Part shown: one piece after another, positions 22,541-28,280 of the stretch
Position numbering within the stretch: position 1 is the stretch's first letter
Layout: each line of letters starts with the position of its first letter
Source: Diplonema japonicum
Taxonomy: Eukaryota; Protista; Euglenozoa: Diplonemea
DNA length: 64,000 nucleotides
NCBI GenBank assembly: GCA_964019335.1
Contig: OZ025693.1
Location: 310,001-374,000, forward strand
Direction: 5' to 3'
Program-made: the position numbers and the translations under genes
Notes under the pieces: model-generated
Seen by the model: only the letters and a program-made list of their open reading frames with translations
Told to the model about the DNA's origin: nothing
The model's database searches: none

Positions 22541-24689
22541 TTAGCAAGTACCCTGCTGCTTCCCGGGGCCCCAATAATCAGGACCCTGTCCGGGGATCCA
22601 TGTTGGGCACTTTTCGCCCATGTGGCTGTAGACAGGAGCCTCGTTGTAGTGGTTGAAGTTCAGGGTGTAGGGACCCACAAGCTGGCAGTTCTGGTTCTCG
22701 GGGTCGTTGATCTGGCAGATCTCAGGCCTCCCGGAGTTCATCTTCGTCTTGTCGAAGACGTTGAGGTCATAGACGTCTAGGTTGGAGAGTTCACCGCAGT
22801 TCACAGTGTCGTTGCCGAACAGGCCACCAGCCTTCCACATGCCGCACACGAACACACAGCACACCATGGACCTCCCCACTGCAGGCTTCCCGTAACGAGT
22901 CGTGTTGTACCTCCATGAGTCCTGCTCCACAATGGTGGGGATCACGCTCGACGACATGTTCAGCTGCGTCTCGGCATACATGTACATCTCAGTGGCCGTC
23001 AGCCCGGTCGTTCCCAACCTCTTGTTCCAAGCAGGCTGGAACAACTGTGCAACAGGCGGTGCGAGGTTGGCTCCGAGAGGGAACAGGATCTCGAGGTGCT
23101 CCCACAATAGACACGCCTCGAAGTTAGGAGGCACACAAGGGTAGTTGTTCTTCACAGTGTCGACCCACCCCCAAAGCATGTTGAAGGTTCCGTACTGGAA
23201 CCCTTCATTGGCCTTGAAGAAGTCCCACATGGCGGTCACGTTTAAGTTGGCACGCCTGGCAGGGTCAAGAGGGGCCCACACAGCGTTGTAACCAGCAGCG
23301 TTAGCCTGTTGCATCCACACGTTGAATGGGGTGCGCTGGATCCCGTTGGTCGGCCAGTACGAGGAGTTGGCGGTGCTCTCACAAATGAATAGCTCGTTGG
23401 TGTTCTCGTCCCTCATGGCAACAGTGGTGTGCCCGGTGGTGGAGCCCATGGCCCATGCAAGCATGGGGTCAAGACCATCAAGACGGATCACGCCAACGAA
23501 GTCACCAGTCTGGATGAGGTCGGGGTTCACACCAGTGATGCCCGAGTTGTTCCTGGAGGCCATAAATGGTTTCACACGTTGGTAGTTAGTCAGGAAGTAG
23601 ATGTTCTCCTCCATTGCCTTCTGGTCGGGGTAGACAGGGTACTTGCCTGCATTAGGCTGAGCGAAGAGCTGCACAGTGTCGAGAAGGTCAACCATGAGCT
23701 GAACCTCATCGTGGATGAAGGCGAAGAACCTGATACCCTTCTTGTTCAGGTCGTAGTTCACGGAGTTCGCCTCGCCTTCTGCCTTCCAGGTGATGGTGTG
23801 GTTGGGCTCTTCGTTCGAAAGCTTCATGAAGTGAAGCCCGTTCACGCTGCCCAAGAGGTACACATCGCCAGTGTGGAGGGCGGAGCACTCGGTGGCGGTG
23901 ACAGTGATGGTGATCTCGGTGTGCTGCTCGTTCCACACAGCCTTGGCCATGTTGTTCTTGCACCCCCTGTTGGTCCATGTCAAAACAGTGCCATCAGGAA
24001 TGGCGTGACCCTTGTGGACAGGGATGAAGCCATAGTAGGGGTATGGTTCTTCGCCAAGAGGGTGGAAGGGTTCGCCTTCCTTCCTCACCTGTGGTTTTGT
24101 GTTTCTTCTTCTTTTTTGTAAAAAGGAAAAGGGTGGTGCATGAAAGAAAGATCCCATCAGAAGAATTTACGAACAGAGGAATGAAAGGTTTGAATCAAGC
24201 CAGAAAGGTCATGCAACTGGTAATCAATGTGTCATCATGTGGGTGGGGGGGGAAAAGAAAGCAAAAGAAAAAATGCAAGTGAAAAAAGAAGATAAAAAAA
24301 ATACAAACCTTCCTGAGAGCAGAGTTGTGCCTCTCAGCAGTGGCCTTCGCCTTCTTCACGAATGAGTCGACGCTCTCGCTCTTCCCAAGGCTCTCCAGGT
24401 CCTCCGCAAGGGACACGGTGTCGATCCCAGAGGCACGGCCCATCCACGACAGGATCCTGTAGATGGAGGGGACATCCTTCAGCTGCTCAGAGGCCCACGA
24501 GGCAATCCTCTTTGCAACCTTTAAATGAAAAGTGTGGAACTCCTCCTTCCCGGTGAAGGGCTCCCCACCCTCCTCCATCCACGAAACGAACTTCTTGTCC
24601 CAGTCCCCACCAGAGGCTTGGAACATGGGGGCTTCCAAGAGGGCAGCCGAACTGGCCCCGATAAGGGCGAGAAGGATGAGTTGTCTCAT
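22541..24689 (-). CDS. Secreted permuted papain-like (NlpC/P60-related) protein, paralogue 3 (more diverged)
   Basis: Exon 24309-24689, intron 24089-24308, exon 22541-24088; same motifs and intron position as paralogues 1 and 2. Confidence 0.82.
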
Positions 24690-26506
24690 ATGTAATGGCC
24701 AAACCACTTTGTGACCTGTGTTGGTGTAAACATATATACGCAGGAAGATGCTCTCGGGATTGTATAAAAAAATTAAAATAAAAAAAATAAAAAAGAGACA
24801 TTTAAAAATGAAGCGAATGAAAGGACCTGAAACAGAAAAAAAAAGGGGGCGAGGAGGATCGAGGATCACAAGGATCGAGGATCACAGACGACCCTTTGGG
24901 CCACTAAGTGACTGACTGTACAAGACGAAACTGATCAGAGACAAGGAACATAGTGGTGTCTCCTGGTGCCCGAGAAAAAAAGAAAAGAGTGCGGCTCATG
25001 TTCGTTCTCTTGTTCCCGACATTTATGTGTTTCGTTGTTCAGAAGAAAAAAAAAAACTCAAAGTACAGGACAAGCCCCCCGCTAGAGGGCCGCCCTATGG
25101 GAGGGGGGGGTCTATCTGTTAATACTTCCCTTCTGGAGCATTGCTTTCATCCCGATTGAGGCCCTGAGCGTCTTGCGGAGTCGTGTGATGCGGTCCCGCT
25201 TGTAGTCGGCTTTCAATTCCATTAGCTTGTCGTGCGTGGAGCGGGTGGCGAAAATAGGCCTCCTGGAGAAACCAATAGCTGCCTTTTCTCCAATGGCTGA
25301 GGGACTTCACTCTTTTTCTCTCGTCCGCTGGGAAGGGGCGTCGCTTCTTCCGTGCCCTGCATGCTGTGTTTATCTTTACGATGAGAGCTTTGATTCCGCG
25401 CGCCCTATCTTCCAGCAGGCCTCCCAAAGACTTTCCGGTCATCCATTCGAAGTCAATGGCCAGTTCCACCGCCGACACCTCCGAGGTGGTGTCCTTCTCC
25501 ACCCAGCGCAGTGACAACCATTGTAGCAGCGGGTTCAGGTACTGGGACAGGAACCCGCTCACTCCTTCGAGCTCGCCAGCTATCGGAACGGGGCATCTCT
25601 TACCTACCACATTTCGAATCCACGGTAGCGGCTGTGTGTTGACATCCTCCTTCTGCATGAGCTCTACGTCTCGTTTCTCAACCACCACGGCTAAGTATCG
25701 TTGCAGCTTCTCTAGGTACGCAAAGTCATGTCCTCTCGGCAGAATCGCGTGCAATTCCAGACACAGGGGCCATCCTGTCCTGTTGCGCAGTGGTTCCAAG
25801 CCGTCCTGTGCTAGCTCTTCCTGTGCGCAGGCGCACTCGTAGAGTTGATGGCGGAGTAGGGTTACCGTGTCCGGGTACGGTGATTCACACAGGTCGCACC
25901 TGAACCCTTGTGTGCGTGGTACTGTCGTTGTTGGGACTTGGCTTATGCTCTCTTCGACTTCTTCGGTGCCGTCACCTTCTGGTGCCAGGGGGACGCTTCT
26001 TTGGTTCGTTCCTGCATGCGGGCTAAGGTAGGGGACCCCTCCGGTGATAACCCGTCTCAGGCAGTAGGACATGAGCGGGTCCTTGGCTGTTTTCCATAGT
26101 TGGTTGGTTTTGGGATCCGCTCCCGCCTCCATCCCTCTCACTGTGTTCCTCTCGTTCGCCAGCGACCTGCTCCGGGCTTTCCTCACCGCGTCCCTAAAGA
26201 CGCGTCCGCGTTCGGCCCAGGGTTTGTTCCCACAGTCTAGCAATTGCGCCCAGCTCCATCTTATATAGGGGAGCCACCGACAGACCAGGTTGCCTACTGG
26301 TCCCATCGGGGTGGACCCCGTGCCGTACCCCGCAGCGATCCGCATGCATCTCTGTCGTAGTCGTTCGTCGTCGAGCGCTCCGGACACTACCTTCAGGGAG
26401 TGGTATATCACATAGGAGAGGGGATCGTTGGTGTGCCCCTTCAAGAGGACTGTGTTCACTGCGGTAGGAGAGCGTCCACGGTGGTGAGGGCCCCATAGGT
26501 TGCACG

Positions 26507-26956
26507 TTACCCTTGTCGACAATTTCTTGAGCGTCTCGTCACATGGGGGGGAGAACGGTCCGCTGTAGCGTTGAGATAAGCCCGACCGTCGAAGGCGACG
26601 TGGATGGGCAGCTTTTTGGACTCTCCCGAGATAGGGGAGACTGCGAGGGCGCCGTTATCGACCGTCAACAAGCGGATGTCGACCTTCCATGCGCGGGCAG
26701 TGGCCTGGATGGTGACCAGGTCGGCGGCGGTACCTTCCTTCGCGTGCTGGGTGCAGTAGGTGTCGTAGTTCCCGGTGACGTTCACTTGGTATTCTTCGCT
26801 TCCTCGCAACTCCTGTATCATGCGGCGCCTAATGTCGCTCCCCTTCTTCCCTAGCTTCTCTCCGACCACTCCGTAGAAGGAGTTCCCGTTCCCGTTCCCG
26901 TACGCCTTTCTGTGCGCCAACATCCCGAAGCCCTTCATAGCTTTTAAAATGTCCAT
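26507..26956 (-). pseudogene. OTU deubiquitinase-like domain inside the retroelement, catalytic residues degenerate
   Basis: GNGNSFY (cf. GDGNCLF), IRRRM, ADLVTIQATARAWKVDI and IHVAFDGRAY (cf. IHLAY...HY). Confidence 0.65.
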
Positions 26957-27237
26957 GGTTGACGTGGACCGCTGATGCTGAAATTGATGCTGTTGTTGAT
27001 GTGTTGTTTGCGCTCTCCTCTCCTTCCCTTCCTTGCATTAACCTAGAAACCTTTACCCTTCCTAAACTTATACACTTCCGTTGACCCTTACACTTCTGTT
27101 TACTTTTATTCCGTTACACTTTTACACCTCCTCTAAATCTTTATACTCCGTTGAACCTTGATGTCGCGTTCTTACTTCCAATATTTGTATTTTCTTTTCA
27201 AAGTTGCTGTGTGAACTTTATTGGCACGGTCGGACAC

Positions 27238-27274
27238 CAATAAAGTACAGAAACTGTAGCTTTAGAATCGTTGG
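27238..27274 (-). other. Genomic copy of the spliced-leader (mini-exon) sequence, lacking the first 2 nt of a 39-nt SL
   Basis: Minus strand reads CCAACGATTCTAAAGCTACAGTTTCTGTACTTTATTG. The last 19 nt (CAGTTTCTGTACTTTATTG) are the conserved kinetoplastid/diplonemid SL 3' end, and the CCAACGAT start matches the diplonemid-type SL as I recall it. Confidence 0.93.
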
Positions 27275-28280
27275 AAAAAAAAAAAAGAACTTTCTTTAAC
27301 AATAGGGGGGGGTTTTTCTTATTCCCCCCTTTTTCCTTTCTTTCTCACGCCACCCCTAATGGGCAGCGATGGGTACTACTGCAGAAGAAATGGGGAGAGG
27401 AGAGAAGAAACAATCATGGTGGGAATTGACCCTTTTTTTTTTCCTGCTATTATCAAAACCGCCCTCTTTCTGTTCGCGCTCCTCTCCCCCCAGTAAGGGG
27501 TGTTGTGTTGACAAAATACTTTTTATTTTTCTCATTTTCCCTTCTTCTTTCATTTGGCCTACAGGCTCCCGTATGCAACATATTCCGGCCCATAGACAGT
27601 GAAACAAATAAAAAAAACCGGAAAAAAAAAAAAGAAAAAAACTTGTGCGTACCTACAAAGGAAATTGCAGGGGTAAATAGAAAGGGTGCGGAGAAAGAGA
27701 AATGGGGGTTCCAAGGATAAGGACCAAAAAGAACAAAATTGTGCGATGATTACACCTGTCGAAGGGTAGAAGAGCACGCGTGAGTTCTTTCTTTTTTTTC
27801 TTATTTTCTTTTTTTCTTTCTTTAAAGTCCTCCTTGGTGTTTGACAGGATAAACAAAAAAGGGGAAAGGGAAGGGGCCCAAGACCAGTGCAATTTTTTTT
27901 TTTTAATTTTATCTTGGAGGGAAAAAAAAAAAAAAAAAGGAAAACAAGAAGAGAAGAGGGAAAAAGAGAGAGAGAAAAAAAGAAGAAAAAAAACCCCCCC
28001 CTCCTTTATTTTTTTTGTTGTTATTGGTGTATAAAGTTGCGCACAATCAAAGAATCCTATTCTTCTCTTGTATGAAGGGAGAAACAAAACCAAAAAGAAA
28101 AAAAAGAAAAAAAAAAACTTGCCACATGTCTACTAACCCTATGCAAGTTTAAGGAAGTGGTAATGCCCAATGTACCCAGTGCAACATTGGTTGTGGGATT
28201 AAGGAAGCGAGATGGAGGATCAAAAGGCAAATTAGCATGCAGTGAGGGACATATTGGCTCTGCGGGGTTTTAAAAGTTGG

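Follow-up and report, generated by a model that had tools for sequence, protein, structure and literature searches.

The host spliced leader is a DNA-encoded and apparently inherited 5′ head in a LINE family of Diplonema japonicum

Introduction

Euglenozoan mRNAs obtain their 5′ ends by trans-splicing of a spliced leader (SL), and the retroelements SLACS, CRE1, CRE2 and CZAR insert site-specifically inside the SL RNA genes, using a restriction-like endonuclease. Other links between small RNAs and retrotransposition are the chimeric retrocopies of the U6-L1 type, which arise by template switching onto a small RNA, and the dinoflagellate retrogenes with relict DinoSL sequences, reportedly described by Slamovits and Keeling in 2008. 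Here we describe a family of long interspersed nuclear elements (LINEs) in the diplonemid Diplonema japonicum, many members of which have the host SL itself as their first nucleotides. The analysis started from one copy in a stretch of 64,000 nucleotides (nt), here called the window (contig OZ025693.1 of GenBank assembly GCA_964019335.1, positions 310,001 to 374,000 of the forward strand); positions without a contig or locus name are those of the window.

Among described LINEs, L1Tc and ingi of trypanosomatids begin with a 5′ module termed Pr77 (PMC1874656, PMC8190864, PMC3185411). In L1Tc, Pr77 is an internal RNA polymerase II promoter that sets the 5′ end of the element RNA, and it reportedly binds the SL RNA gene factors TBP and SNAP50 (PMC8190864). 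Dinoflagellate retrogenes carry both DNA-encoded and relict DinoSL (PMC6050394, PMC5585692). A full-text literature search returned no report of SL-headed LINEs or SL-tagged retrocopies in Euglenozoa, and SL-headed elements are mentioned neither in the genome note on D. japonicum, whose published assembly is a PacBio HiFi assembly of D. japonicum YPF1604 (PMC13598402), nor in the diplonemid intron paper.

Results

The element starts with the genuine spliced leader of its host

On the minus strand, the element in the window begins exactly with 37 nt of SL behind a run of 12 T and stops before a run of 11 T (Table 1), as a preliminary description of this DNA had stated. The 37 nt correspond to nt 3–39 of the exon of a bona fide SL RNA gene (L029), which has a 39-nt exon, an intron, a 3′ stem-loop and a T-run terminator, shows a spacing of 352 bp and adjoins a 5S rRNA gene (102.6 bits). 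Contigs of run X6, taken as RNA-type because their depth is very uneven, join the 3′ end of the SL (27236–27238) to positions 24689, 24117–24121 and 24279 on the same strand, and the joint at 24689 is also present in X12. The same leader stands at the extreme 5′ end of 70 metatranscriptome contigs. By these three independent lines, the 37-nt head is the organism’s real spliced leader. The 19-nt core of the SL occurs once in the window, and it occurred in 0 of 100 shuffles.

When the sequence behind the SL was tabulated across the assembly, the true intron was attached to only nine of 232 SL cores, and the other cores were found to head LINE families, a 79-copy subtelomeric family, further families and single retrogenes. 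That so few cores sit on a true intron indicates that this genome, much like those of dinoflagellates, has been shaped by the retroposition of RNA that bears the SL. The true-intron sites include two tandem pairs (C15:779061-779439 and C59:512396-512768, both in G000); the C15 pair lies ~1 kb from the end of its contig, and real SL RNA arrays may therefore be largely unassembled. In several metatranscriptome contigs (L100, L103, L108, L120 and others), the 3′ end of one SL is followed by a second SL that lacks its first 6–7 nt. These starts may be library or assembly artefacts, or they may record SL-on-SL events.

The leader is encoded in DNA and apparently inherited within the family

A motif in the 5′ untranslated region (5′UTR) just behind the SL has 43 matches in the genome, and in all of them SL sequence abuts the same G of GTGTCC, which in the window copy are the first element bases behind the SL (minus strand). 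We inspected 37 of these 5′ ends directly and placed the other six by their coordinates against SL matches. The flanks upstream of the heads are unrelated among copies, which amounts to at least 40 independent sites. A splice acceptor, consisting of a polypyrimidine tract and AG, was present at the junction in none of the 43 genomic 5′ ends. An acceptor-bearing master copy was also considered and was ruled out for the assembly, there being none among the 43 motif matches; variant heads at real AG sites do exist, and no copy carries an acceptor for the canonical junction. The encoded SL ends in TG and not in AG, so trans-splicing onto the transcript of an SL-bearing copy cannot remake the junction. 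Since no junction has an acceptor, the head must pass from DNA to RNA and back to DNA. The canonical SL head is thus DNA-encoded and apparently inherited.

The extreme 5′ nucleotides of the head vary. The SL at the start of sister copies is 37, 38 or 39 nt long, in many cases with two additional C, and within near-identical subfamilies the element opens with CCAACG right after the T run (the window copy and its full-length sister L061) or has A, CCA or CCAA in front. These variable first nucleotides show that each insertion copied an RNA ending at the SL’s own 5′ end (nt 1–3). The two nucleotides absent from the window copy had been attributed to a reverse transcriptase (RT) that stops at modified cap residues. 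That idea fits the data loosely at most, as the 5′ ends are heterogeneous (37, 38 or 39 nt) and not uniformly 2 nt short. Whether the SL is complete differs between subfamilies: a full SL heads 21 of the 22 copies of subfamily A and 1 of the 15 copies of subfamily B (Fisher P = 3.5e-8), the other B copies beginning after the T run within the last ~16 nt of the SL.

The head shares structure and donor context with SL RNA

In the computed fold, the SL side (27246–27237) forms 10 bp with an anti-SL arm, CCAATAAAGT (27224–27215). Arms of this CCAATAAGT type pair with the last 9 nt of the SL and with the G of the GT behind it across a 12-nt loop, and the hairpin stem is lengthened by CUGU/ACAG and AGUU/AACU. 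A complementarity scan found 12 bp including G-U pairs, a value reached by 5–6 of 200 shuffles for this family, and the hairpin amounts to a simple stem, with a z-score of only −1.96 for a 100-nt fold. Three divergent LINE families retain the anti-SL arm, to which a strand in the intron of true SL RNA corresponds; a 5′UTR block, TTTGAAAAGAA, is kept in three of the four element families aligned. The preliminary description had held that the sequence behind the SL is not SL RNA intron, and this was borne out: apart from the portions dictated by pairing, alignment and loop shuffle gave no significant similarity to the true intron (P 0.25–0.4), and the two nonetheless share the GT start and an SL-complementary strand.

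The bases that follow the SL exon differ in frequency between element heads and mRNAs. The next base is G in all seven independent multi-copy SL-headed families, against 18.6% of 70 real SL-mRNA junctions (P = 7.6e-6), and the next two bases are GT in five of the seven, against 7.1% of those junctions (P = 3.5e-5). Single retrocopies with other bases behind the SL were found at 24 sites (e.g. L218, L220). The donor-like G/GT context accompanies the ability to multiply, and no current model explains it fully. Metagenome matches to the plain SL pattern were mostly transcript contigs and served as the mRNA control; none of the SL-pattern metagenome contigs encodes a relative of this LINE, and the pattern of SL plus anti-SL arm had no match in marine metagenomes.

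The purine-rich 5′UTR (26957–27235 in the window; L062:6938-7048) also contains tandem motifs of 18–19 nt, in two to three copies per array, with a consensus of about GGTTTAACGGAAGTGTAA on the element strand. Some LINEs have monomer promoters, of which these motifs are reminiscent.

Trans-splicing of element RNA occurs as a side route

Element RNAs are also trans-spliced and then retrotransposed, a side route that yields a minority of variant heads. In relict heads, a full SL is followed by a partial SL that starts exactly after an AG inside the leader, either after AAAG (L082) or after CAG (L090, L017, L026 and C83:358321). Among the 22 heads of family A, two are of this kind. L217 has lost the anti-SL arm, its SL being attached to the LINE 5′UTR at CTCAG/TAACGG, and one RNA contig joins the SL to ~27023, ~65 nt upstream of the start of open reading frame (ORF) 1, though this joint is weak, with 21 nt on one side.

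These observations bear on the proposal, made in the preliminary description, that the element is a full-length cDNA of a trans-spliced element RNA and that its life cycle runs through host trans-splicing rather than its own promoter. What survives of the first part is that the template ended at the 5′ end of the SL and that trans-spliced RNAs have been retrotransposed by the side route (L082, L090, L217); for the canonical junction this route is not supported, with acceptors at 0 of 43 sites. The second part, trans-splicing in each cycle, is likewise not supported in view of the TG at the end of the SL, the missing acceptors, and a G/GT context and anti-SL arm that are typical of SL RNA.

The window copy is an internally deleted member of a 6.5-kb LINE family

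The window element (27274–25057, minus strand), dead and with an internal deletion, belongs to a LINE family of 6.5 kb that encodes an apurinic/apyrimidinic-type endonuclease (APE) and an RT. Its full-length sister L061 measures 6,513 nt, is 97–98% identical and contains the domains Exo_endo_phos (4.4e-10; the APE) and RVT_1 (2e-22), and an older full-length copy, L062, shows 86–89% identity. Compared with L061, 4,288 nt from between ORF1 and the post-RT region are absent from the window copy, which is thus left without APE and RT domains as a non-autonomous derivative. Element positions 1–718 match the 5′ end of full-length copies and positions 719–2230 match the 3′ 1.5 kb of many copies at 97–98%, and DNA contigs diverge at 26568 into full-length element sequence (as loose ends). 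The family is described here from two full-length copies and many 220-nt ends. The APE and RT of L061, a ladder of 5′ truncations, a single 3′ end, the lack of long terminal repeats and the dispersed sites identify it as a LINE family. As had been proposed, it differs from the SLACS and CRE elements, and membership in the SLACS/CRE/CZAR group was rejected on two counts: an APE domain is present, and the copies sit at T-run sites with unrelated T-rich flanks and a complete SL at their start.

The window copy codes only for a stump of ORF1 and the C-terminal tail of ORF2. The first ~129 amino acids of the stump are the ORF1 N-terminus, and beyond the deletion junction the tail is out of frame. 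Pfam matches of the ORF1 N-terminus to OTU and Otubain were weak (E 0.2, below the cutoff), the OTU-like region had no match among solved structures, and the 467-amino-acid ORF2 tail had no Pfam match. A GNGNS motif in ORF1 (26570–26956, minus strand) lies at the position of the catalytic Cys of OTU proteases. A transcriptome ORF is 96% identical to the RT-containing ORF of L061, which indicates that the element’s ORF2 is transcribed. The distant relatives (33–35%) are LINE proteins of Diplonema papillatum; overall, the relatives found by the protein search were for the most part diplonemid or came unnamed from transcriptomes or metagenomes, and no named trypanosomatid protein was among them.

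Insertion sites, 3′ end and surroundings of the element

On either side of 5′-truncated copies stands a T run, the two differing in length, and there is no further duplication; the family thus targets oligo(T) tracts, which it enters in a single orientation. All copies of the family share the same last 15 nt, ...CTGTACTTTGAG (ending TTTGAG), without poly(A). A 9-mer, CTGTACTTT, is common to this 3′ terminus (25057–25071) and the SL, a match equalled in 25 of 20,000 shuffles. On that account the 3′ end of the element is a second possible pairing partner for the anti-SL arm. If the T run flanking a copy were transcribed into a U-rich RNA 3′ end, this end could base-pair with oligo(dA) on the nicked strand, which would explain the choice of target.

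Short-read DNA contigs from two studies (X1, X4) matched both flanks of the element without differences; they enter the element by only ~15 nt, which falls short of the 31-nt rule for bridging. Empty-site alleles with a single T run, anticipated by the preliminary description, did not turn up in the primary assembly or among the joints of the read contigs. Upstream of the element, a low-complexity A/T- and purine-rich stretch (27525–28123) has a very high summed contig depth, and 27891–28123 was skipped as a repeat in read-contig mapping. The element has the orientation of the downstream genes, whose trans-splice sites appear in RNA contigs near 24689 and 24117–24121 (minus strand). For the long ORF at 22541–24157, a start downstream of the first ATG is probable, and a GT donor stands behind CCACAG at ~24090 (minus strand).

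Table 1. Layout of the SL-headed element in the window, listed from its 5′ to its 3′ side
Feature	Position	Strand	Remarks
T12 run	27286-27275	minus	directly 5′ of the element; 5′ half of the oligo(T) target
DNA-encoded SL, nt 3–39 of the 39-nt host SL	27274-27238	minus	same as the exon of the 5S-linked SL RNA gene
GT right behind the SL	27236-27237	minus	splice-donor-like context, as in real SL RNA
Hairpin spanning the SL/GT junction	27202-27255	minus	computed fold and complementarity scan
Purine-rich 5′UTR, 281 nt counting from the GT (27237)	26957-27235	minus	family alignment
Truncated ORF1, 149 amino acids	26507-26956	minus	ORF translation
Internal deletion junction	26568-26569	minus	comparison with the full-length sister; 1 nt of microhomology
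467-amino-acid ORF, the post-RT C-terminal part of ORF2	25119-26522	minus	with a C2H2-type zinc-finger motif
3′ terminus GTCCTGTACTTTGAG, invariant, without poly(A)	25057-25071	minus	comparison of sister copies
T11 run	25056-25046	minus	directly 3′ of the element; 3′ half of the oligo(T) target or target-site duplication

Other SL-headed sequences in the genome

A family of 79 copies consists of the SL, then GTCGTTCG..., ~190 nt, and an A run (e.g. L009:877-1095, G000 contig ends). Most copies lie within ~10 kb of a contig end and point outward, and the SL is present at all 79 sites. Its appearance is that of a subtelomeric retroposon or gene family with an SL head. In L221:60-160 (G000:C101:338794), an SL is followed by CCCT and then by a second, complete 39-nt SL that heads the subtelomeric family; CCCT and the first two A of the second SL together read CCCTAA, which resembles a telomere repeat unit. 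A further element flanked by T runs (L220:70-925, G000:C43) has a different 3′ end, ...CAAAGACACC, and TAGGAG... follows its SL; L016, a short derivative of this element, bears a head of the GTATCGACC type.

At L004:1480-1700 (G000:C2:150576), the SL exon and ~93 nt of the true intron are fused to unrelated sequence that contains an ORF. This arrangement points to template switching onto unspliced SL RNA, and suggests that an RT can switch onto SL RNA.

Discussion

The explanation that we regard as probable, taken as a whole, combines an inherited SL-RNA-like head, initiation of the element RNA at that head, and splicing as a side route. Full-length members carry a head made up of the host SL exon (37–39 nt), a G/GT donor context and an anti-SL arm that folds over the junction. 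Since no copy has an acceptor at the junction, retrotransposition must use as template an RNA with its 5′ end at SL nt 1–3 that already holds the encoded SL. This 5′ end would be made by transcription starting at the head, and the resulting RNA, though not trans-spliced, would look like a mature mRNA with its SL. Internal promoters at the 5′ end are in use in other LINEs. That the RNA starts at the head because the head or the 5′UTR acts as an internal promoter or a mimic of SL RNA is a tentative proposal, for which our confidence falls somewhat short of even. Read-through transcripts would sometimes be trans-spliced at AGs in the encoded SL or the 5′UTR, giving rise to the relict-SL and re-headed copies. 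The first head could go back to one ancient trans-splicing event or to capture of the 5′ part of an SL RNA.

A more far-reaching form of this idea, and one that we think rather doubtful, is that exon, GT donor and anti-SL stem together make the SL head a portable unit for transcription and capping, which starts RNA polymerase II at SL nt 1 wherever it is inserted. In that case the LINE and the other multi-copy families, the 79-copy subtelomeric one among them, would make SL-bearing, translatable RNA without trans-splicing. The 200-plus SL heads might also act as extra SL donors.

Several points weigh against inheritance of the head and initiation at it. The start points of the B copies inside TTTCTGTAC could arise at each insertion by microhomology with the T run, and would then owe nothing to inheritance. 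Families with diverged 5′UTRs still have an SL identical to that of the host, an identity that would be automatic under repeated re-acquisition and that under inheritance calls for selection. An acceptor-bearing master copy could reside in unassembled sequence. With regard to initiation, the read evidence consists of contigs, which cannot show RNA starts, and the known SL RNA promoters of trypanosomatids lie upstream of the gene, which makes an internal promoter in the SL head a hypothetical one.

If every copy were the cDNA of an RNA trans-spliced at the junction, from masters that carry a polypyrimidine tract and AG before GTGTCC, the position of the junction exactly at the 3′ end of the SL exon and the variation of the 5′ ends at cap-proximal nucleotides would follow, as would the match to the host SL across diverged families; the relict heads and L217 show, moreover, that trans-spliced element RNAs have been retrotransposed. 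We nevertheless consider this improbable, as an acceptor takes the place of the SL in 0 of 43 genomic 5′ ends, SL-bearing copies with their final TG cannot remake the junction, G/GT behind the SL is atypical of real acceptor sites, and the state of the head depends on the subfamily. A variant with still another route to a single SL supposes that splicing takes place at CAG or AAAG in the encoded SL and that the cDNA then slips between the identical 16–22-nt repeats, so that the SL is ‘healed’ and the relicts are the unhealed minority. This would keep the SL identical to that of the host, and the T run upstream of each copy could act as polypyrimidine tract; the relict heads do begin exactly behind the two internal AGs. 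However, slippage would be required in ~90% of events (family A has 20 single and 2 relict heads), and neither the B copies, with no AG upstream of TTTCTG, nor the GT bias would be explained, which makes healing very unlikely in our judgement.

Capture of SL RNA concerns only the origin of the head and is compatible with the inherited SL-RNA-like head that we favour. Here the cDNA of an ancestral LINE would have switched template onto unspliced SL RNA, for which L004, with its SL exon and ~93 nt of true intron fused to another gene, offers an example; GT, loop, CAATAAA and ACAG follow one another in the head as they do in the true intron, and G or GT stands behind the SL in all multi-copy families. 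Against this, the similarity outside the SL-pairing parts is not significant (P 0.25–0.4), nothing beyond G or GT links the other multi-copy heads to the intron, and switch points would have to cluster at intron nt 1–2, so that we see capture as a possible source of the first head but would not count on it. The 5′ end might alternatively be cut from a read-through transcript at the boundary of T run and SL, by a self-cleaving ribozyme or a nuclease. Such cleavage would give a defined 5′ end without a promoter and would suit a structured head, and there is a precedent in the HDV-like ribozyme of L1Tc (PMC3185411), but no Rfam family matched 24900–27400 even at E up to 10 and the hairpin is a simple stem (z-score −1.96); we hold this to be most improbable. 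An accidental arrangement, namely a LINE that landed beside an orphan SL RNA gene or a chimera of the assembly, has next to no chance of being correct. It could appeal to the GT behind the SL and to nothing more, whereas the same junction of SL and element recurs at 40 or more independent sites with unrelated flanks, there is no intron, terminator or linked 5S gene, and DNA contigs of two studies agree with the flanks; the orphan gene is refuted by the sister copies with their unrelated flanks together with the lack of intron homology.

The inherited head bears on the means by which a selfish element, in a cell that relies on trans-splicing, can produce RNA that is full-length, translatable and copyable, a task for which trypanosomatid LINEs use Pr77. 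The host leader, the donor context and the back-folding strand point to mimicry of SL RNA. If the head sets its own 5′ end, it would serve diplonemids, an emerging genetic model, as a compact module with promoter and capping functions, and it would amount to a natural experiment on the determinants of SL RNA transcription. Should the head prove to be a portable unit, SL-bearing RNA would be made independently of the trans-splicing on which the other mRNAs of the organism depend for their 5′ end.

Comparison with known systems

The element and a bona fide SL RNA gene (L029) have the identical exon followed by GT, and in both the 3′ part of the exon finds a pairing partner in a strand further downstream. 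The element differs in having neither intron sequence, 3′ stem-loop and T-run terminator nor a conserved upstream region and array, and the possibility that the element is itself an SL RNA gene was rejected, only exon, GT and anti-SL strand being shared. Chimeras of the U6-L1 type find their likeness in L004, in which SL RNA is fused to another sequence; in contrast, the LINE head keeps at most the GT of the intron and is a stable feature of a family, not a one-off event. SLACS, CRE and CZAR are, like the D. japonicum family, euglenozoan non-LTR elements physically linked to SL sequence. Unlike them, the D. japonicum family has an APE, enters T runs anywhere and begins, at 40 or more unrelated sites, with a complete SL of its own.

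L1Tc and ingi resemble the present family in being euglenozoan LINEs with APE and RT in a trans-splicing host, in having a short conserved 5′-terminal module common to several families, and in a C-terminal C2H2 motif. Their Pr77 lies in the first 77–79 nt, whereas the first 37–39 nt of the D. japonicum family are the SL, and the module here is made of the host SL, GT and an anti-SL hairpin, with a promoter role that is putative. The two also part at the 3′ end and the target, with a poly(A) tail and a target-site duplication of ~12 bp in L1Tc and ingi, and a ...TTTGAG end, unequal T runs and an oligo(T) target in D. japonicum. Dinoflagellate retrogenes, finally, share with it a DNA-encoded SL at the head of retroposed sequence, which here forms the exact 5′ end, and relict SLs cut at an internal AG after re-splicing (here L082, L090, L017 and L026). 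In D. japonicum, however, the carriers are an autonomous LINE itself and other multi-copy families, and single intact heads dominate, with the donor-like GT kept behind them and, in the LINEs, the anti-SL arm as well.

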